Shown here: one piece after another, positions 56-61,323 of the stretch
Position numbering within the stretch: the first letter of the stretch is position 1
Layout of the letters: every line of letters starts with the position of its first letter
The notes under the pieces: generated by a model
Databases searched by the model: none
What the model was told of the DNA's origin: nothing
What the model saw: the letters and a program-made list of their open reading frames with translations, nothing else
Assembly: GCA_943704425.1 (NCBI GenBank)
Contig: CALSCP010000733.1
Location: 1 to 64,000 of the forward strand
Direction of reading: 5' to 3'
DNA length: 64,000 nt
Source of the DNA: Ministeria vibrans ATCC 50519
Taxonomy: Eukaryota > Protista > Filasterea
Program-made: the position numbers and the translations under genes

Positions 56-260
56 GTGTTCACACGATTCGTTCAAGTTGGCCGTGTGGCTTTGATCAAC
101 GCAGGCCCGTGCGAGGGCAAGCTCGCCGTCATTGTCGACGTCATCGATCAGAACTCGGCGCTCGTCGCTAACCCGTGCACTGGTGTCAAGCGTCAGGCCG
201 TCAACTTCCGACAGCTCTCTCTCACCGACTTCACCGTAAGCCGACATCGCTCTCACTCAC

Positions 261-291
<31 letters not shown>

Positions 292-306
292 CACTCAATT
301 TTTCTT

Positions 307-361
<55 letters not shown>

Positions 362-466
362 CTNNNNNNNNNNNNNNNNNNNNNNNNNNNNNNNNNNNNN
401 NNNNNNNNNNNNNNNNNNNNNNNNNNNNNNNNNNNNNNNNNNNNNNNNNNNNNNNNNNNNNNNNNN

Positions 467-561
<95 letters not shown>

Positions 562-838
562 CGGTTTTTTCTGCCCCATCGTCTCATCATTTTTTCTCTT
601 CATGTGAATTCAGATCAATGTCGGTCTCAACGCCGGTCCGGCCAAGCTCACCAAGGAGTGGGAGGCTGCCGAGATTTCGAGCAAGTGGGAGGCGACGCCC
701 TGGGCCAAGAAGCTCGCTCAGCGCAAGCGACGTGCGACTCTGACTGACTTTGAGCGCTTCCAGGTTATGGTTGCGCGCAAGCAGCGCTCCAAGATTGTCC
801 ACACTGAGCTCAAGAAGCTTAAGAAGACTGCCAAGTAA
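56..838 (+). CDS. RPL14: 60S ribosomal protein L14 (eL14); 5' exon lies outside the window
   Basis: Exons 56-235 ([33 protein letters not shown]...) and 614-838 (...[29 protein letters not shown]...TAA). GTAAG...CAG intron with CA/CT repeats and an N gap. Confidence 0.96.
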
Positions 839-1087
839 ACGTACCCTCTACTGTCTTATGTTCAAAAAAACCCCCTCCCCCCGTACACACACACACTCAA
901 AAGAAGCAGAATCAAGAAACTTTCATGTCGTATTGTAAGGATTTTGAAGTTTTTTGTGTGTATTTTTTTCAAAGAGTTAGGAATAGTGTACAATCGCTCG
1001 CCTTTGTCTATGTCTCTCTCCTCTCCGTCTCTCGGTTTATCTTTCTTTCCAGTTCTGCATTCTTTTCATAAGAATGAGAACGTGGCT

Positions 1088-3204
1088 TTACGTTGGACGC
1101 TGCTGGCTCTGCAGACGACGCATGCTCTGCTCCAGTTCACGCGACTGTCCACGTGCAAACGCCAAGTCTTGCGACATATTCTTGAGCTTTAAAGAAGAAG
1201 GCATAATGGGGGATGAGGAAGGGGGAAGGAGGGAACATGTGGTTTAGAGTACCTCCGTGGTGAGCTGACGGATGCGCTCTTGGGCAATCATCAGCTGCTT
1301 ATGCAGCTGCTGTACCTGCGTCTCGTTGCTTGGGCCCTTGGCCGCGACTTCGCTCGAGCGACGCTCCAACTGATACACCGCTACACAAGCAGACAACGGG
1401 GACCGTCATATATCAATGTTTTTCTTTATTTTATATTGTTATTTTTGGTCTTTACCTCTAAGAATTTCACGGCCAAGTTCTGTGCGAGGAATGGGCGTGT
1501 CAGAGTCGGAGGTAACAGACTTGGTGGCATTCAAAAGAGGAGGGGTGACGCTCATGGGTACGGAGGGGTCGCGCGAGAAAGCCGAGACGGGAGGGGCACG
1601 CGACTGCGATTGGGTCGCCGCTGCTGACGTCGTCGTCGTCGTCGACGGAGCGCTTGCCGCTGATACTGGCACGACTGCTGACATTGCTGTTGGTGCTGTT
1701 GTTGGTGTTGTTGCTGAGAATGATGACGAGGGTGTGCCTGTTGTTGAGGCGGGACTGGGTGTGGAAGTCGCGGCAGCTGGCGTGTCTTCGGAGCCTGGTT
1801 CACTCTTGGCGCTCAGAGACGATGTCTTGTACTGCTGGAAGAGTTGTTTGATGGGAGGAGAGGCAAAGTCAATGGGGACGTCGCCCTTGTTGTTGCGAAT
1901 GGTCGGGTCAGCGCCGGCGTCAAGCAGCTTCTTGACAAAGCCAACGTTGGTGGACTCGGCGCAGATGCCGATGACGGTGTCGCCGTCGGGGTCCTGCTGG
2001 TTGAGCTTGAGATCGACAAGGCCGCCGCGGTGCAGGTCAAGCAGCACGTCAATGTAGTAGTCGGCCGGCTTGTGGTACGTGGGATCGCTGAGGTTGTATG
2101 CGAGGTCGTGCAGAGCTGTGTGACCGCTGACGGAAACAATGCCAACACAGTGCAGGCCAATGAGACAGAGAATCTCATAGAAGTTGCGATTGCGGTAGCA
2201 ATAGTCAAACTGCAGCATGCGATGGAGCGCCGACTCGCCATGGCTGTTGAGCGCATCTTGCTTGAAACCGTTGTTTACCAACAGCTTCACAATCTCCGCC
2301 TGCCCGTACACCGCCGCCCAGTGCACCGGTGTGTGTCCGCTGTGGTCCAGGACAAGCTGACAAAACTGTTCCGCTGTGTAATAATAACACAAACAAACCA
2401 AAGAAAGGAAGAAAGAAAGAATGCAACGTGGGTCAAGTCATTGTGTTCTACCAGGCGTTTGAGTTTCATTTAGTTGGTACCGTCAGGTTGACCAATGTGG
2501 AGCAGGCGGGCAGTCTCGGCGGCATTGCCCATGCGAATGGCATCTATGACAAGCTCTTCAAAGTCGCCGACGGGCACGTTACCCTGGTCCGACGCCCGCT
2601 GCGGTGCAGACGTCTTGTGTGCGGCGCGCCGGTGCGCTTGTGCTTGTGCGTGCAAAAATTTCTTGCCACGACGACTAGTGAGCATTGATGCGTGGTTTTG
2701 CGTAGCGCCCAAGGCAGGTCCGGCAGTCGCGCCAATGGCCGAAACCGGTGTCGCTGCCGCGCCACTTGGCGGAGCACCCTCGTCGTCTTTGCGCTTGCGC
2801 TTCTTTGCATGTACATTGTTGCCAGTGCCATTGTTGTGCCAAGTGAGTCTGAGTAGAACGAGTATGAGACAAAAAGCAAAGCTACTGTTCCTATACGTGT
2901 GTGTGTGTGTGCATCTTACTTTCGCGTTGAAAACCATCGTCTTACAGCGTCTGGTGTCGCATCGACTTGCTTCGCAAGCGTCGCAGTCTCCTCATCGGTT
3001 AGGTATGGATTTACTTTGAAGGTTGCCGACATGATATCCTCTTGATCGCGCGTGAATGTCGGTTGCTAGATAATGTGTATTGCTCGATTGAGTGAATGTG
3101 CTCTCTTGATTGTATCGTCCATCAGCGCCCCAATGCCAACCTCCTCTGCGTTGGTCAATGTGTAACAGGGGTTGTCCAGACAGTTGGCGACTGCGATTCC
3201 CATA
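1088..3204 (-). CDS. Homeodomain + Swi6/Mbp1/Cdc10-type ankyrin repeats + C-terminal coiled coil; 5' end uncertain
   Basis: Exon 3065-2920 translates QPTFTRDQEDIMSATFKVNPYLTDEETATLAKQVDATPDAVRRWFSTRK (homeodomain). It splices in frame to an exon with the NLS-like KKRKRK, then to the ankyrin exon (GHTPVHWAA..GESALHR..GHTALHDLA..QDPDGDTVIGICA..GADPTIRNNKG). Two 3' exons encode heptads; stop TAA at 1090-1088. Confidence 0.8.
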
Positions 3205-4566
3205 TGGTGCGCCGGCAGCGACGGCAAAGCGAGTACGAATAAAACGTATAATTGTCTTGTGCTTTCACATTGCTGTCACACGACGGTTGAGTTGAAACTC
3301 TCCTTTGTGGCCGATAGCGACAAGCGCGGCGGGGATTATAAACGAGTGGTGGGTGTTGGGAGTCGTTGAATTTGAGCATTCATTCGAGTGGCGACCGAGA
3401 AGGAAAACAGAATAAGAAGCGCAAGGAAAAAAAAGAAAAGAAAAAGGAAAACGCGATGGGCTGGTGTTGGAGCAGGCGACGTTAGGCATGGCTGGCATGT
3501 GCGAAGGAATCGAAGGCGTATCGACTTACCGGAGTATCATCAGAGGCATTGGAAGATTGGGCAGCCTTTGGCTTGGCAGTGGGTTCGGCAACGCGACAGC
3601 GCATCGCAGTGCACGTCTCGTCGTCGCTCTCGTCATCGCTGTGCGGCGCCGTGATTACCATTGCCGTCCAAGGCAATTTGTCACCTTTTAAAACATACGA
3701 TTCAGCACAGCGCAACGGTTCGCAAGGGTGTGCATTGCCACGCACACGCGGCCAACAACGCCCCATTGCCAGTTGCAACCCCCCAAGAACCCCCACCGTC
3801 CTGCCTCACACCCTTTCCCCCAACCGCCCCGCCCTCCCCCTTCCCTTCCGACCTCGCCACCCCCTNNNNNNNNNNCCCCCCCCTCCGCCCATCCTCTTTT
3901 AACCACAAAGAAAATCGCCCGACCCCCCCACACACACCTTCCCCATAGTAGCCCATAAAACGTTAACGGCTCACCCCCCAATGTCACGCGTGCCATATGC
4001 TATAGGTTTCGCGCCCAAAAATTGAAGCCCGCGAAGAAATCCAAAAAAAGAGACCGGCGCAGTCACTCATAGCCTCACACCCACACGCTCTTACCGTCGC
4101 TGCTCATGGTACCAAGAGAGTGGCAAAGAATAGAATTTTTTGACGTTTCAGGAAACTGGAAAATTCAATAAAAACTGTGTGATGAAATGATCACTTTGCC
4201 GGAAAGCGACAAGCGTGCACGCGGCTCGCACACAGACCGCACTTGCTCTGACAGACAGGCTCACAGACTGACACAGTGACACTCACTGACTCGAAGAGGG
4301 CGCAGAAGGAATTAGTATCGTTTGTTGAGAAATGAAAGGAAATGAAAAAGTATATCCAAAGTATTCCTCCAATTCAGCAGGCTCGGTTGGGGCTGCAATT
4401 GGCAAGAGGGCGTGGCAGTCTGGCTGTGTCTAACATTTCACGGTGACTGGGCTGACTGGCAGGACCGTATCGTGAACAAATTGGTTGCAATGAGGTTCGG
4501 TTCATCTTCGTAATGTGAAACGGAAGTGAAGTGAAGCGTTCTGTCAAAAATAGAGGCTTCATCACA

Positions 4567-4647
<81 letters not shown>

Positions 4648-4736
4648 CATGAAGAGTGTTGAAAGGTCAAAGGCGCGCTGATTGTTGATTACGCGGGTAT
4701 ACATTATATATCTACAGTGTGTCTCGCGCGCTCTGT

Positions 4737-6007
4737 TCATGTGAAAGTGCTCGTGAGCTCGGCCACCCGACGTGCGTGTTCGTCCTGCGCCAGCTTCTCA
4801 ATGAGCGTGTCCAGCAGTCTGTTTTCAGCGTCAAAGAAGGCAGTTACTCCCGTCACCGACGCACCCACACGGTGGTCCGTTACGCGATCTTGCGGAACGT
4901 TGTACGTGCGAATGCGCTCACTGCGCTCTGCAGTGCCAATCTTAAGACGAAAGGCAGAAAAAAAAAGGAAAAAAAAAAAACAGAGACACAAAAATAATGA
5001 AATGACATCACTCTGTTGCAAGCTACTAACTTGAGAGTTCCTCAATTCTCGCCGTTCGGAGCGCAGTCGCTGTTGCTCGGCATCATAGAGACGGGCGTGG
5101 AGTACCTCCAAGGCACGCGCCTTGTTCTGGGAGAGGCGCAAGACAGAGAGAGATAGAGAGAGAGAGAGAGATTACGTAGAGAGAGAGAGTAACAAAGTGA
5201 TAAAGAGAGTGACAAAGTGATAAAGAGAGTAACAAAGTGATAAAGTGATGGAAATTGATAGAGAGAGAGAAACAAAGTGATAGGGAGAGAGATCGGTTTG
5301 AGATTGAATGTGTGTATGTGTGTCATAGTGTGTGCTTAGTGTGTGGAGGTGAAATAGTCGGTGTGAGTGTCTGGGTGTGATATGTGTGTGCTGTTAGTAT
5401 ATATAAGGCGTACGGCATGTTGGGAACGGCCCTCCTGACACTCTGCAACGACTCCCGTCGGCAGATGAGTAATGCGCACCGCACTATCCGTCGTATTGAC
5501 GTGCTGTCCTCCCGCACCTGTTGCACGGCACGCTTCAATCTTCAGATCCCGTGCATTAATCTGCAGAAAAGAAAGAAAGAAAAAAAAAGAAACCCTTGAG
5601 TCCAATGCAAATGTGTGGCACTCAATCACCCACATTAATGACTGCCTCGGTGGGCTTTGGCAGAAGAGCCACCGTCGCCGTCGACGTGTGCACGCGTCCC
5701 TGCGTCTCCGTCTTAGGCACTCGCTGAATACGGTGCACGCCCGTCTCATGCTTCATCAATCCAAACACCCCAGTACCCTTAATCGTCGCACTCATTAGGC
5801 CTCGAGCGCGTGACGACACATTCGCTTGCCACCCGTGCGACACCGCAAACATCTGGTACATTCGGAAAAGGTCCTCTGCAAACAGTCCTGCTTCTGCACC
5901 ACCCACACCTACACCCAGCAACTCATTCAGTCTAACGGGTTTTTCTCCAACATCATTCACTAACATAATGTAGCAAAAAGTACCACACAAATCAAACTAT
6001 AATAATG

Positions 6008-6041
<34 letters not shown>

Positions 6042-6809
6042 CACTCACTGATCACTCACTCACTCACTCACTCACTCACCCACCCACTCACCCACTCACT
6101 CACTCACTCACTCACTCACTTCACTCACAAATAAACGTCATACCGGGTCGAACCTCCACGACGGCGTCCATGGAGTCCTCATCAAGAGGTGGTAAGAGCG
6201 CGTCGAAAATGAGTTTCTGTACGACACAGGACGAAAAGGGTCACGCAATAAAACAAACTCAAAGTAAGACTACCTCTCGTTCTTTCAACAAGTCGTGTGC
6301 CTCAACCAGCTCGGCAGAGGCCAGCTCCTGAAGATCAGCATCATTCGACTGCTTCGCCTCCAACAGCACTTCGTTGAGCTCCACAATGCCCTGTGTAGCA
6401 ATCACCAACCACCACATGAGCCACTCTCTGGCTGTGATTCGTTCAATCCAGTAGACCTACCTGCTGCGCTGCTCGGTACTCGTGGTAGGCAGACGTGAGC
6501 GGCTCGACCTTGGCAATGGCACGCGACAGAGCATCGTACTTTTGTCCGTCGACAACCTACGCAGTCAGTGGTGTGGTTTGCGACCGCCAATCACCGTGCC
6601 TCCTCGCACCCCCTTACGTCTTCTTGCTCAACCACTCTCAGCTCTTCCTGGATTTTGGCCTGATCCACAACCATCGACTCAAGATGCTTCACAATTCCTT
6701 TTGACAATTCTGCTTCGCGACGAGCCGTCACCGACAACGCTCGCCACCCACAGACACCGCCACCTACCCGCCAACCCACATGTGCATGCCGACACGCCCT
6801 TAAAAGCAT
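4737..6809 (-). CDS. MRF1: Mitochondrial/organellar peptide chain release factor 1 (RF1/PrfA type), multi-exon
   Basis: [22 protein letters not shown] (GGQ motif), [18 protein letters not shown] (PxT motif), [20 protein letters not shown]. Arg-rich N-terminus MLLRACRH... resembles a presequence. Confidence 0.92.
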
Positions 6810-7004
6810 GACGTCAAAAATATTTCTAGTCGCATTGATCGTTCATCGTATCATTCGTGAATGTGACTTACGTGGTTTGCGAAATGGCTCAAAGCTCATT
6901 TTTCTCAAAATCTGACAAAACACAAATCTGAAATCTGACAAACATTAATCAATCACGTTCTGTCTTTGTCCGTTTCCCTCGCGACCTCCCTGTATCTGTA
7001 GCAA

Positions 7005-10000
7005 ATGCACGCTCTCGATGGCGGCGCAGCGTCGCCCGACGAGGTCGCGCCAGCCAGCGACGAATCTTCCCCCGTGCACGCCAACGCCGACCCCCCGACA
7101 GCGCCCGACGCCCTTGTTGGTCCCCATCCTCGTACGTGTCATTCATGCACGCGCAGTCGTCTGGCGTCTGTCGATCTCTCGCCCCACAACCAATAATATA
7201 ATATTCTCTTTTTGCTCTGTGGCATTTTCGGTCGAATTTAAAACTCACATCATATCTCACTTGCCCTTTCTTCTTTTCAGCATCCATCGCCGAATTACCA
7301 ACCTACCGCGAGCAGGCTGCCTGGTACAAGGAAGCGGAAGCGTCCAATCAGATGAAAGAAGGCGACCATTGGTAAAAAGAATTCATATCACAGTCACATT
7401 TTTGTTATACAATTATTAATTTTAATTAATAACGGTTGAGTATCTCGCCTATTTTTTTTGTTTTGTTTTTTGTTTCCTCCGTCGCATCTGACTCCATCTT
7501 GATTCCCGTCCGCTCATCGGCCCTTACCGTTCCGTGTAGGTATCTCGTTGCGCAAAAATGGTTCGACGGGTGGCGGCGATTCAGTCGGAGCGGCGGCGAC
7601 CGTCCAGGACCCATCGACCAGAGCACCATTCTTGATGCACACACAGGCCAGCTGCTGGAGGGGCTCTTTGAACACCTAGAGGTTGCATATGTGTGCGAGC
7701 CCGTCTGGCTTATGCTCCTCGCGTGGTACGGCCTCGACGTCGATTCACGTCCTGTCCGCCGTCGTGTCTCACGCAACAGCCGTTTGAACAACACACTCAT
7801 CATCGCCGTTTACAAGAAGGTCGTCAGCGTATTCCACACGTCGCACCCCAGCACCAGCGTTGCCGTACGTGTCCACATCTACGAGACTATGGGACATGTC
7901 AAGAAACTGGCGCTCGACGCGCTCGCCCAATCGCCGCAAATCACGTCGATTACCCCCGCAACGTTGCCAGCGCTCGTCGACACACGCCTCCTCAACGGCA
8001 ACGTCGTTGTCAAAGAATCCGACAAATTTATTGACATACCGGACACAGCGGTGTTTGTCCTCGATGTGCGCGAGCCTGGCCAAGAGTGGTCCACTCCAAG
8101 TTTGTCGTCGACTAACCTCGCGGCCAAAAGCGCCCCCGTCTGGCCAGCACGCATGGACACTGCAATCACTACAACTTCAACAGCATCGACAAACACCGGC
8201 ACGAGCACCGCTCTTGCGCGTCCCAAGCCCCTCTACTCAACAGCGGGCTCGGGCTCGGCTCTTGGCTATGGCGCGTCGTCATCATCCACCACCTCTTCTT
8301 CTGGCCTTTCGTCGCTCTACGGCACAGGCACATCGTCGTATGCCAACCGAACCCAATCACCGCCGGGCGTCACGGGTCTGTCCAACCTTGGCAACACCTG
8401 CTTCATGAATGCGGCGCTGCAATGCCTGAGCAACACGCGAGCGCTCCGCGACTTTTTTATCAACGACACCTTCGTCGAGCAAATCAACCGCGACAATGTC
8501 ATGGGCACCAAGGGTGAGCTTGCGGAAGCATTTGGCGAGCTTCTCAAGCGCATGTGGACCGGGGGCTACTCGTCGGTGTCGCCGTCACACCTTAAGACAG
8601 CCATTGGCCGCAAGAACACCGCCTTCTCAGGCTACCAGCAGCACGACTCGCAAGAGCTCCTCTCCTTTGTGCTTGACACCCTCCATGAAGACCTCAATCG
8701 CGTGCTGGTCAAGCCCTACATTGAGATATCCGACTCGGGCACACGCCCAGATGCCGAAGTTGCCGCCGAGCAGATTGGTGCGCATCAGAAGCGCAACGAT
8801 TCGATCATTTGCGATATTTTCCAGGGTTTCTACAAGTCGCGCATTGTGTGTCCCGATTGCAACCGTGTCTCCGTCGTCTTCGACCCCTACTCGCTGCTTT
8901 CTGTACCTCTGCCTGGGCTTGGCAAGACCAACATTCAAGTGACGCTTATCCGTCGTGACCCAATGCAGCTGCCCACGCGCTTCCTTGTACAAGTGTCCAC
9001 GGGCGCCGGAACGCTCCGTAACGTCTACAAGGCTCTCGAGTCTGTGGCCATTGTCGATGCTGAACGCCTGGTGTGCTTTGAAGAGCACCGCGGGCGCCTT
9101 TGCAAGGTGTTCAAGGAGTCGGAGTCGGTGTCGGACACACGCGAGACGGACCATCTCGTCGTTGTCGAGGTCGAGGCCAAACCTCGGCTGCCGCCGCCCG
9201 TTCCCAAGTCGTCGTACAGCAGCAGTGGCTACTGGAGCTCCAATTACTACGGCGGTGGCAGTTCTGCCGCCGTCAAGGAGGAGCCTGTTGTGCCCGATGA
9301 CCCCGCCAGTCTACCTGTTGTTTTTCTCAGTCACGAATTTTACACGACACACTACTCCTACGCCACCTACTTCTTTCCGTCGGCCTTGTCCCTCCCACGC
9401 ACCTGCTCATTTGCCGAATTTTACCAGCGTGCTTACGAGTCGGTAAGCACTTTATTGTTGTGGTGTGAGAGATGTGTGTATGTGTGAGTCTCTATTTTTT
9501 CGTTATTTTGATGCGATAGTCAAAAAAAAAATATTGTTTGTGTTCTTCTTCGTTTCATTTTTGTTTTTTGAACTTTTTGTTTCTTAGTGGGCGAAAACAA
9601 TGTGCATTTCGCCGGAGGTTGAGGAGTATTTGCGCGAGGCAGGGTACTGGGTACCGCCATGGACTAACGATGAGGAGCCAATGGAGGAGCAGGTGGAAGT
9701 AGAAGAGATTATGGCACAAGGCTGTGCGAGCGACACTGTCCACTATGAGGGTTCGCTGGTGGACTATGCTGTGAGCGAGGCAGACACGTGTGCGGGCGAG
9801 ACGCAACCCATGGATCTCGACGACGACGATGCCTTGGAGCGGGCGTACCGTGAGAGTGCGCCTGCGGCCACTGACGACACCCAGAGCAAGAAGATGTCTG
9901 CCGATGGTCTGGATGAGAATTACGACAACAGCGACGACGGCGCCAACATAAGCAACACGACGAAGAAGAACATGGCTCGCGTCCTGCCACCTTCGCTGAC

Positions 10001-11435
10001 CAGCAGTCTATCGTCTGTGGCGGCCGCAGCAAGCCTCGCAACCAATTTTACTAGCACCGCCACTCCCAGCAACAACGGTGCGGCGCTGACCTCTGCCTCG
10101 ATTGAGGACGAAATTGACGAGGACGACGCGAATCACGACTCTCTGTTGGACACAGGCGCTGCAAGCGTTGCTGTCGATGACTATTCGAGCGCGCAGTCGT
10201 CGACGTCGATGGTGACTGTGACCCCACCCGACTCGCCCGTGGTTGGGAACCACGCATCGTCACCATCGTCCAGCCGCCGAGTTGATACAGTACCGCCCAT
10301 GCGCAAGCTGCTGTTTCACATTTTCAACGACGATTATTCCAAGAAAAAGCTGTTGGCTACTGACGTGGTCGAGGCGAAGCCCAACTCGCGCTACATGTGC
10401 GAGTGGGATGCGTCGCTTAAGGACAAGCTCTCTGCGTTACCTCTTCCCGATGTGGTTGAAGATGCGAGTGTGGCCGAGGCGAAGGCGCGCCGCTCGAGTT
10501 CCGTGTCGGTACATGATTGCATTGAGCGCGCGCTGGTGGAGGAACAGCTCGACGACGACAACATGTGGTACTGTTCGCAGTGCAAGGAGCATCGTCGTGC
10601 CTTCAAGAAGTTTGATATTTGGACGTTGCCACGCGTACTTGTGATTGCTCTCAAGCGCTTCTCCTACTCGACCTACCGACGCAGCAAGATCAACTCGCCC
10701 GTGGACTTTCCCCTGCGTGGCCTCGACATGTCGCGCTACCTGTCTGGTCCGCGCACGGACGCACAAGGCCGCCCTGTACCCACCGTTTACGACCTGCAGG
10801 CGATCAGTAACCACTATGGAGGTTTGGGTGGCGGTCACTACACGGCGTGTGCTCGCAACGGCTCGCAATGGTACAACTTTGATGATTCGTACACGACGAA
10901 GTTGAGCGAGGCTGATGTGCGCGCACGCGACGCTTGCGGCGCCGCCTATGTTCTTGTGTACGTGCTGCGTGACGAAGAGCAAGAAGCTTTTGATCGTAAG
11001 AGAGGGGAGGAAGAGGAGGCGGAGGCGGCATCAGTAGGCGAGGATACCGGTCGCGACATGGACACGAGCGATGACGATGACTTTGGTGATTCGCGCAACA
11101 CGCTCCATTCCCCACAGGGTGCTTCGACAACGACAACTACTACTGCAACAACATCATCAACCGCAGCATCAACCGCAGTCGCATCATCACCGCTTTCAAG
11201 TGTGGCTACTGGTGGGGCTCCTGCTGTTCACACAGTACCTCCATACGAGGACGACGACGACAGCGACGACGATGATTTGACGCACCCCACTTTGGTGCAC
11301 TTTCCCTCGGCCAACACCCATGGCACCACCACCACCACCACTACTACTACTACTGCTCCGGCTGCGCCCATGGACACCATCCGTGCCACTCCCGCTGACG
11401 ACGATGATGATGAGGGTATCGTGCTTATCACTTGA
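7005..11435 (+). CDS. Ubiquitin-specific protease, USP4/11/15-like (DUSP-UBL-split catalytic domain)
   Basis: DUSP-like W|YLVAQKWFDGW..PGPID; Cys box GLSNLGNTCFMNAALQCL; QQHDSQELL; EEQLDDDNMWYCSQCKEH; His box HYGGLGGGHYTA..WYNFDDS. Introns near 7132-7280, 7372-7539 and 9443-9587. Confidence 0.93.
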
Positions 11436-58900: not shown

Positions 58901-61323
58901 GCCGGCGTGTGCCGAAGAGCACACTACAATGGAGGTGTTTGTCCGAGGCGACTGAGGAGCGAGTGAAACGACACATTGGGGACGGTACGATGGTGACGTT
59001 GCTGCTGCACTTGTGTAGCGAGTCGGCGGACGGCAAAGCGGTGTGTGTACTGACCAGTACGCTCTCGCCGGTCACTTTTCGCCTGTTGTGCGATTCTGTT
59101 GCGGGCAGTCGACGCGGTGAGGCAAATGTTGTGCGGGTTGACGGTCACTGGAGTATAATTACTATATGTGCCGAATTACCATCTACGAGTCTTGGTGGTG
59201 GACAGGAGAGGGTGTGTGCATACAGTGACACAATATCAAGTGAACCAGTGACACTTTCGAGTCAATCTGTGCCGCGCGAGATTGGACAACTGGCACTGCG
59301 CTGGATATGGGACGTGTGTAACTCACAGGGGTATACACTGCGCCCTCGACTGTGCACGACGGTGGCGATGCAGGCTGGGGGGTCGAAACCTGTGTCCGAT
59401 AAACACGGCGGTGTGATGGCAAACGCGTCGGAGAAGAGTGAGCTGGTACAAATACATGTGGAATGCTGCGGAGCGCAGGGGAGAGAGAGGGCTTTTTCAT
59501 TGCTCGCTGCAATTCATCACTTTGTTCGACGAGTGGAGGTGGTGGACGAGCGCACGCTTCATCTGTTGCAGGAGCGTGAGGTGTTCAATCGACTTATCTT
59601 TAGGGGTGTGCTGGACGCATGCGGGACACCAGTGGCTGACTTAGCGGCCTGGTGCAAGAACAAGGAGCACTGCCAGATGCAGGTGTTGTCATCGGGCACA
59701 ATCACCGTTGAGGGACCCACTTCTGCGCTGGTGGACGACTGCATGCGCAAGATCGCCTTGGTTTTGGAGCATCTGGCGACGACAAAGCAGCAGATTGACT
59801 TGTGGGCTTTGACACAGCAACGAGGCTACGCATCAGAATGTGGGACTCGTTCCAAGGGTGGCACGTTTGCGGATGGGTGCGAGCAGCGAGTGTTCAAGGT
59901 TCTGGTGAGAGAGGTGCCTTTTGCGCATGTACGTGGCTCATTTGAAGTGACAGATGGCGACGGTGAGGGTGTGTTGGCGACGCTCACGTGCCGTAAGATT
60001 TTTTTCGACGTTTTGCGCGATGCAGTGTACGAGCATGTGGCACGACTGCGCAAGCAACTGTGTTTCCGTGTGTCAACACAACCCAGCATGTATTGTCGTC
60101 AATTACATGACACTGGACGGACCCATTCAAAGCTGGCGGCTGTGCAGATGGCCGTGACGGATCACTTGACGCCCATTGATCACGGCGTGAAGCTACTTGA
60201 GACAGATTTGCGCCAGGAGAGCCATCGTGAGAAGACTATGTTGTCTCTGTTGGCTCAGTTGCAGGTAGCAGCGGAGGAAGCGGATGGGGCAGGTCGCGGC
60301 GGCGACGGCGACATGCTCAGCGTGAAGCAAGCGGCGGAGATCCTCTCGGAGAGGCTGGAGTGGGGGGCGACCACACCGGAGAATGACGACGAGGAGGGTG
60401 TTGTGACGGTGAAGATGGTGCACAACCAAAAGGTCGCGCGTGAGGTGCGATTACAGAAGGAACAAGGCTTGAAGATGTGCGCGGTGCTCATGTGGGGGAC
60501 GCATGAGGCGCTGGAGCAAGCAGAAAAGGAACTGGCGAAATTCATTGATGGTATCTCACGGGATTTGTGCTGTCTGTGCTTCGTTCGCAAGCCTGTCGAC
60601 GTCTTGATTGCCTGTCCAAAGGGAGAGAAGGAACACCAGATGTGTACAGATTGCTTTGTAGCCGGAGCCAAGGTGCAACTGAAGAATCATGCATTGTTGA
60701 CGACGCGACTGTCTGCGTCACAACAGGTCCAGATTGTGTGCACCATTTGCGGTGTAGGGAAAGATGAACGTCTGCCCGCATACGCAATGACAACAGTGGT
60801 GGGTGTGGGTGACGAGTCACTGCTGACGGCCCTGAGTGAGGCGCAGAGGCGTGTGACGGAACAGATTGTTACGGAAGAAGTGCGGAAGCAGGTGCAGGCC
60901 GAGTATGATCGAGAGCTGGAGCGAATACGCAACATGGACACGGTCGATCGAGAGGTGTTTCAGCTGTGTCGCGAGGTGGAGAACATGCTGAATCTCGCGT
61001 GTCCACGGTGCAAAGTAGCCTTTGTAGACTTTGATGGCTGTCTCGCCCTCAAGTGCAGCAACTGTCCGTGCGGATTCTGTGCATTGTGTCTCAAGGATTG
61101 TGGCGGCGATGCCCATGCGCATGTGCTCCGTTGTCCCAAACGGAATGGCGCAGATTCGTATGGTAGGGCAGGAGAGTTTGAGGAAGTGCACCGGCTTCGT
61201 CGCACGCGCGAACTGGGGCGCATTCTGGGGAACATTACCAATGTCACAGTTTACAATCGCGTACGAACAAGCGCACTAAAATTTGTCGAGGGCCAACATA
61301 TCGCCGTACCTCCTCCACGATAA
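49644..61323 (+). CDS. RNF213/mysterin-like giant AAA+ ATPase with C-terminal RING + RBR-type RING2 (Rcat), ~3,860 aa, 2 exons
   Basis: Exon 1 49644-49861, GT-AG intron, exon 2 49953-61323. Motifs PLVLEGETGEGKT/IVFIDEINC/SACNPYR/YTVLPLPHSL/VSLRELDR; PVFLVGPPGSSKSL/QCSKS/VVLEELGLA..LKVIHSLLD/VGFVALSNSLVDAAKMNR; C-terminal CCLC..C..H..CTDC..CTIC and CPRC..FDGCLALKCSNCPCGFCALC..HAHVLRC. Confidence 0.88.

Follow-up and report, generated by a model that had tools for sequence, protein, structure and literature searches.

A predicted gene of Ministeria vibrans joining a divergent homeodomain to an ankyrin block of the SBF/MBF type

The window analysed here, a stretch of 64,000 nucleotides of contig CALSCP010000733.1 from Ministeria vibrans ATCC 50519, belongs to an assembly that totals 29.7 Mb in 2860 contigs; its DNA is eukaryotic, with many dinucleotide microsatellites and with spliceosomal introns that are short. 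Near its beginning lies a six-exon gene which, read on the minus strand, runs from an ATG at 3203-3201 to a TAA stop at 1090-1088 and which joins a homeodomain to an ankyrin domain that, judged by its sequence, is homologous to the ankyrin block carried by SBF and MBF, regulators found in fungi, beyond what a generic ankyrin array would offer. SBF and MBF drive G1/S-specific transcription via SCB/MCB sites and are controlled by Whi5/Nrm1 and the cyclin-dependent kinase (CDK). In the predicted protein, the parts follow one another in the order homeodomain, KKRKRK stretch, five-repeat ankyrin domain, Ser/Thr/Pro-rich linker and heptad coiled coil. A preliminary description of this DNA had placed the gene at 1088-3204; the end at 1088 coincides with the stop codon, and the start has to be moved by one nucleotide to the ATG at 3203.

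The five introns are 66 to 107 nt long, all of the GT-AG type, and the reading frame is kept at every junction (phases of 0, 2+1, 1+2, 1+2 and 0, in order), with an in-frame stop occurring 1 to 6 codons past each donor. All exons are on the minus strand and were searched one by one, not as a joined spliced protein. Exon 1 (3141-3203, 21 codons) is putative: it was read from translation, ends in Ala-Glu-Glu and is followed by a weak donor, GTTGGC; no other coding-like frame was found upstream of it as far as the next gene (at ca. 4700). The homeodomain exon (2920-3065, 48 residues), recognised by Pfam, has its AG acceptor at 3067-3066, and its GTAAG donor begins at 2919. Exon 3 (2481-2848), which alone gives no Pfam match, encodes a basic, disordered linker with the KKRKRK cluster (2788-2805) located just past the homeodomain and, further on, the first (capping) ankyrin helix pair, which is completed in exon 4. 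The latter (1456-2373) has an Ank_2 match in Pfam (E 1.3e-13), and its first 185 codons (1817-2373) encode ankyrin repeats 2 to 5 and the C-terminal capping helix; within this SBF/MBF-type block, a non-canonical middle of 92 residues (1967-2242) lies between canonical repeats and carries the family-specific signal discussed below. The remainder of exon 4 (1456-1816) corresponds to a Ser/Thr/Pro/Ala-rich, low-complexity linker of ca. 120 residues with seven minimal Ser/Thr-Pro sites and a weak Mucin-like Pfam match that is compositional only. Finally, a C-terminal heptad region begins in exon 5 (1253-1380), with hydrophobic residues at exon positions 22, 25, 29, 32, 36 and 39, and goes on in exon 6 (1088-1186), with hydrophobic residues at positions 1, 4, 8, 11, 18, 22 and 25, up to the TAA. 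When the two exons are translated separately, the 3-4 hydrophobic register is unbroken over their junction, a continuity that supports the splice junction itself.

That one gene joins the homeodomain and ankyrin exons is confirmed. The preliminary description had proposed a homeodomain exon at 2920-3065 spliced in frame to ankyrins and followed by a C-terminal coiled coil: the coordinates of the exon proved exact and its GT-AG sites in phase, every ankyrin motif string that was quoted is found in the exon 4 translation, and the heptad pattern is seen in exons 5 and 6. Independent support for the fusion is provided by a predicted protein of the ichthyosporean Chromosphaera perkinsii (Nk52_evm50s266 in EukProt, 727 residues, hereafter P0134), since it holds both domains in one polypeptide. 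There, a homeodomain at residues 89-137 is followed by a basic linker, an SBF-type ankyrin block, a low-complexity linker and a coiled coil of ca. 250 residues; a cap segment equivalent to that of exon 3 occurs right before the GHT.VHWAA motif, and acidic residues directly precede the homeodomain, as at the end of exon 1. P0134 also has a precomputed match to PF28422.1. We regard as very improbable an artefact of the gene model, by which the homeodomain exon would be a relic or form a small gene of its own, with the ankyrin/coiled-coil gene beginning downstream. Such an artefact would fit the weak support for exon 1, the lack of a family match of its own for exon 3 and the derivation of the model from genomic sequence alone; it is at odds with the canonical in-phase junctions and short introns, with the splitting of the ankyrin cap repeat between exons 3 and 4, and with the Chromosphaera model, where a single protein contains both domains, similarly spaced and in the order seen here.

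The homeodomain is a real one, despite having no Asn51. Its exon scores 34.3 bits with the Pfam Homeodomain profile (PF00046; E 2.1e-8; cut-off 22.9), finds its best PDB matches among the Engrailed and POU homeodomains and fits the 60-residue homeodomain frame without a gap, the hydrophobic core formed by Phe8, Phe20, Trp48 and Phe49 being kept as in the family profile. The canonical DNA contacts, Asn51 and a basic N-terminal arm (Arg5), are missing from it. Asn51 is highly conserved in the homeodomain family (PMC3460184). In the window protein, the sequence of helix 3 is WFSTRK, codon 2927-2925 placing Thr at position 51; Lys takes the place of Arg at position 53, position 5 is Gln and, provided that exon 1 is right, positions 3 and 4 are Glu, which gives an acidic N-terminal arm. 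Nine homeodomains were found genome-wide; all eight others keep Asn51, leaving that of the window as the sole exception. The homeodomain of P0134 has WFSKRK in helix 3, with Lys51 and Ser5. The atypical helix 3 pointed out in the preliminary description is confirmed, and its loss of Asn51 is common to the Chromosphaera protein. No alignment to P0134 was obtained by BLASTP with the homeodomain, with exon 3 or with exon 5. A small homeodomain class is defined by these two proteins, with Asn51 lost in two distant lineages.

These substitutions bear on an alternative that we consider unlikely, though it is the strongest of those weighed here, namely that the homeodomain no longer binds DNA and that the protein is a Swi6-like cofactor, a non-DNA-binding subunit or adaptor brought to chromatin via partners bound to its coil or ankyrins. 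The window protein and P0134 both depart from the canonical residues at position 51 (Thr or Lys), position 5 (Gln or Ser) and position 3 (Glu), in a family that strongly conserves Asn51 and in a genome whose other homeodomains all retain it. A parallel is offered by Swi6 and Cdc10, in which the KilA-N/APSES domain is degenerate and which carry the same scaffold without binding DNA themselves. Against such a cofactor, the fold residues Phe8, Phe20, Trp48, Phe49, Arg52 and Lys53 and the adjacent basic stretch have been kept in two distant lineages, and the genome has no second ankyrin-block protein that could act as a DNA-binding partner of the Swi4/Mbp1 kind.

Any multi-repeat or consensus ankyrin scores well on two canonical repeats, and the 92-residue middle of the block (1967-2242) was therefore isolated as the test of kinship with SBF/MBF. 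An exhaustive HMMER search among 1.84 billion representative proteins yielded only five matches at E<0.001, which correspond to the organism's own metagenomic twin, P0134 (E 1e-9), a fragment (P0135), a marine protein (P0136; E 9e-5) and a fungal one (P0137; E 1.7e-4); against the PDB, the middle block matched no ankyrin protein at E<10, Swi6 included. In a further relative, represented by the contig of P0135 (L031), the ankyrin block occurs as an intron-rich copy. P0136, encoded at positions 160-3195 of a TARA ocean metagenome contig (L030), is an intronless product of 1011 residues with a Chromo domain, an SBF-type ankyrin block and a Bromodomain; its source is a GC-rich marine eukaryote, and it represents a third architecture bearing the block. 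The source of P0137 is Entrophospora sp. SA101 (GCA_958305575.1), a glomeromycotan fungus, where the preceding gene model matches KilA-N; P0137 aligns with yeast Swi6 over one stretch of 120 residues (E 2.6e-18). At the fungal locus of P0137, L029 (4771-7221), two CDS (coding sequences) of 227 residues have been annotated publicly; a single open frame of 610 codons (5389-7221) links the ankyrin block to the APSES C-terminus on one side and to a coiled coil on the other, and this locus is therefore one Mbp1/Res-type gene split in two by annotation.

When the whole block of the window protein was compared by BLASTP, the scores were 127 bits for P0134 (36% identity), 102 bits for P0136 (34%) and 92 bits for P0137 (32% over 188 residues). 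The alignment of the window and fungal blocks is colinear over ca. 165 residues with few gaps, and the best ankyrin paralogs of the genome itself reach only 53 bits, versus 93 for the fungal locus by the same method. A pattern scan of metagenome contigs further provided 253 relatives. Among the best 80 of these 253, an APSES domain lies 0.5-1 kb upstream on the same strand in about 70, and a homeodomain in none; among the loci devoid of APSES in this set, eight have too short an upstream sequence and one, L092, is a generic ankyrin array. As tblastn with the middle block missed most fungal loci through seeding, HMMER was used in its place, with a profile (hidden Markov model, HMM) of that block derived from 35 fungal sequences with APSES-linked blocks (length, 95 positions). 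To the window protein the profile gave 36.9 bits, with an E of 1.3e-9 and a match from position 2 to position 94, and to P0136 and P0134 it gave 42.4 bits and 30.6 bits, respectively, versus 10.6 bits or less, in partial matches only, for all generic controls, which comprised own-genome paralogs, a tankyrase-like protein, the best generic word-index matches, the consensus-like array and viral ankyrins. A scan of viral contigs gave four weak matches, each at 10.6 bits or less on the fungal middle-block profile, and no viral source of the ankyrin block was found.

Several less selective comparisons would fit an ordinary homeodomain-plus-ankyrin protein of the Wariai kind, whose likeness to SBF/MBF would be convergent or due to mere ankyrin consensus. 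Protein-atlas look-ups, based on protein-language-model neighbours, returned generic ankyrin clusters only; PDB sequence searches with the whole block or with a 3-sequence profile were dominated by multi-repeat (giant) and designed ankyrins, with Swi6 ranking 36th, 28th and 11th; and Foldseek ranked several five-repeat ankyrins about level with Swi6. A word-index protein search turned up nothing beyond generic ankyrins and the twin from the organism itself, a blank that is uninformative because its length window of 183-581 aa shut out the fungal SBF proteins, and the same search with the P0134 middle block found P0134 itself only. This explanation is nevertheless largely refuted, and we give it little credence: neither the PDB nor, at E<1e-3, the set of 1.84 billion proteins contains a generic ankyrin that the middle block matches, the fungal-only profile separates the window protein from every generic control, and the alignment to fungal blocks is colinear over ca. 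165 residues.

The structural comparison points in the same direction. AlphaFold2 (AF2) predicted the ankyrin block with a pLDDT (predicted local distance difference test) of 96 and a pTM (predicted template modelling score) of 0.90 from an alignment of 39 sequences; the model made from the single sequence had a pLDDT of 41 and was unusable. Among 997 ankyrin chains, Swi6 (1sw6_A) came first, with a Z of 20.5, a root-mean-square deviation of 2.1 A and 30% identity over 171 aligned residues. A maximum-likelihood tree was built from 39 blocks, of which the three that are non-fungal fall on one side of a branch with 99/97 support and 36 rows on the opposite side; the latter are fungal-type blocks, save for the generic array L092, and most have APSES upstream, the fungal sample having been chosen by similarity to the window. 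The spacing and linker of the ankyrins, which the preliminary description had ascribed to the fungal SBF/MBF type, are thus borne out by the middle-block search, the APSES-linked relatives, the fungal-only profile and the top structural match, and in the profile search, with generic ankyrins for comparison, the block of the window protein groups with the SBF/MBF blocks. Of the two outcomes that the description named as refuting, neither occurred in so far as sequence analysis could show, and the overall interpretation given there is supported.

Taken together, these data suggest, with a probability that we put at roughly 0.78, that this locus is a nuclear regulatory gene of a unicellular holozoan with the layout of an SBF/MBF subunit, in which a divergent homeodomain replaces the KilA-N/APSES domain. 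A number of points weigh against this conclusion. Whole-block similarity is non-discriminating, as the consensus-like generic array L092 reaches 68 bits, after which whole-block tblastn scores were dropped as a discriminator; the case rests on the 92-residue middle, where most fungal sequences taken singly score only ca. 8 bits, and the 80 metagenomic loci were picked for their likeness to the window, which favours the profile test slightly. Swi6 is ahead of the next ankyrin protein by only 1 Z unit and the AF2 alignment is dominated by fungal sequences, and the structural match is therefore supporting, not decisive. The ankyrin-block tree is unrooted. BLASTP finds no alignment between the two homeodomains, that of the window protein and that of P0134, whose orthology rests on architecture and on the common loss of Asn51. 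Lastly, exon 1 with its weak donor is uncertain, within a model to which genomic sequence alone has contributed.

In a published survey, SBF homologs turned up in fungi only, and KilA-N was the one domain that could be traced to viruses or phages (PMC4862756). The previous restriction of SBF homologs to fungi in that survey, the rarity of non-fungal members in the present searches and the lack of a root in the tree would all agree with an ancient transfer, in which a fungal SBF/MBF gene or its ankyrin-coil part entered the holozoan lineage and a homeodomain then replaced KilA-N. We find such a transfer improbable, since the three non-fungal blocks nest in no sampled fungal subclade and lie on the far side of the 99/97 branch, and since the block occurs in at least three divergent organisms, in two architectures, with a mutual identity of only 34-38%. 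In a different history, the ankyrin-plus-coil scaffold would have existed before KilA-N was joined to it and would have acquired different chromatin or DNA modules in different lineages: KilA-N in the case of fungi, Chromo plus Bromo in that of the marine eukaryote and the homeodomain in the present gene. The SBF/MBF scaffold would then predate Fungi, having served in a homeodomain- or chromatin-linked regulator of the opisthokont ancestor onto which viral KilA-N was grafted in the fungal stem, replacing the original N-terminal module. We propose this origin tentatively, at somewhat less than even odds; such a host-side scaffold is consistent with the unrooted tree, not proven by it. If it is true, the holozoan homeodomain-ankyrin proteins would be survivors of the host factor as it was before the graft.

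SBF/MBF is a well-known core cell-cycle regulator of abrupt appearance in one lineage and, with KilA-N alone traced to a virus or phage, the origin of the rest of the SBF protein had stayed open. The window gene, its Chromosphaera counterpart and the marine Chromo/Bromo relative place the SBF-type ankyrin block outside fungi together with other N-terminal modules. What is new is a non-fungal home for the SBF ankyrin scaffold, joined to other chromatin or DNA modules. This offers a concrete candidate for the host scaffold of the SBF chimera, and the grafting scenario becomes testable.

As to how the protein might work under our preferred interpretation as a nuclear regulator, KKRKRK has the classical pattern of a monopartite nuclear localisation signal and would take the protein into the nucleus. 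The coiled coil is predicted to dimerise it, and a homodimer appears likely because no second copy of the SBF-type ankyrin block was found in the 29.7-Mb genome. By analogy with the Swi4 ankyrins, which serve Clb2/Cdc28 in this way, the ankyrin domain may be a docking surface for regulators, and the Ser/Thr-Pro-rich linker is a possible kinase target. With the contacts described above replaced, the homeodomain may either bind a non-TAAT site or have become a protein-contact module. A role at G1/S would be conjecture, supported by no computed result here: one ACGCGT (3986) and one TTTCGCGC (4007), MCB and E2F-like sites respectively, occur ca. 800 bp upstream of the start codon and, at window-wide densities of 0.41 and 0.08 per kb, these single occurrences are within chance expectation.

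A six-frame scan of the 29.7-Mb genome gave no candidate for KilA-N (PF04383), in an exon-by-exon search of a fragmented assembly. Four matches to E2F/DP were found, T-box and Runt are both present, and neither light-harvesting proteins nor a Rel homology domain were found in the genome. HSP70 homologs showed ca. 72% identity to animals, none of them from a close named relative. The gene content (E2F/DP, T-box and Runt, with no KilA-N) probably reflects a unicellular holozoan.

The gene is preceded upstream by a neighbour coding for a mitochondrial-type release factor (ca. 4700-6000). The assembly has gaps (runs of N) at ca. 370-480 and ca. 3860-3875, bordered by microsatellites of the (GA)n and (CA)n types; the latter gap falls in the intergenic region upstream of the homeodomain-ankyrin gene. 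Further along the plus strand, two long open reading frames (ORFs) lie side by side at 7436-11435, each of them matching the UCH ubiquitin hydrolase profile in part and the first one DUSP as well; together they are probably one USP-type gene with an intron. The same strand carries an ORF ending in a SUEL-type rhamnose/galactose lectin domain (37188-38081), one for a bZIP protein (47918-48898) and an open frame of 3786 codons (49963-61323) with dynein-type AAA_5/AAA_7 matches, for a giant AAA protein that may be midasin-like. A metagenomic scaffold of 2774 nt (L008; ENA metagenome SCHR19-1_SAMN09406007, scaffold_4092) has 99% identity to window positions 885-3674, which places the same organism in this public metagenome.

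When compared with its nearest relatives, the window protein shares with Chromosphaera P0134 the order of the parts, a helix 3 of the form WFS.RK without Asn51 and acidic residues before the homeodomain; P0134 differs by a far longer N-terminus and coiled coil and by an extra residue between helices 1 and 2. P0136 likewise has the SBF-type ankyrin block and groups with the two homeodomain proteins in the tree, whereas it carries Chromo and Bromodomain modules and has no detected homeodomain or coiled coil. The association of a homeobox with ankyrin repeats has been described for Wariai of Dictyostelium and for homologous amoebozoan proteins (Han and Firtel 1998, cited in PMC4053784). In Wariai, as in the window gene model, a homeodomain is followed by ankyrin repeats in one polypeptide; Wariai is not among the five middle-block matches obtained from the 1.84 billion proteins at the strict threshold of E<0.001.

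In the SBF/MBF subunits (Swi4, Mbp1, Res1/Res2 and Swi6/Cdc10), disordered strings link the structured domains, which are DNA-binding, ankyrin and C-terminal, in an arrangement called "ball-and-string"; the Swi4 ankyrin repeats bind Clb2/Cdc28 and the C-terminus pairs the SBF/MBF subunits (PMC5448814). The window protein has the same overall layout and a homologous ankyrin block that includes the non-canonical middle, with a heptad coiled coil where SBF/MBF carry the pairing region, as is also the case for the fungal gene at L029. It differs from SBF/MBF in that its N-terminal domain is a homeodomain, not KilA-N/APSES, in that its C-terminal region has no detectable sequence similarity to theirs, and in that its host keeps E2F/DP and is probably a holozoan rather than a fungus. 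Since it has no KilA-N/APSES domain, the protein is not a member of SBF/MBF; it is a homolog of the family's non-DNA-binding scaffold.

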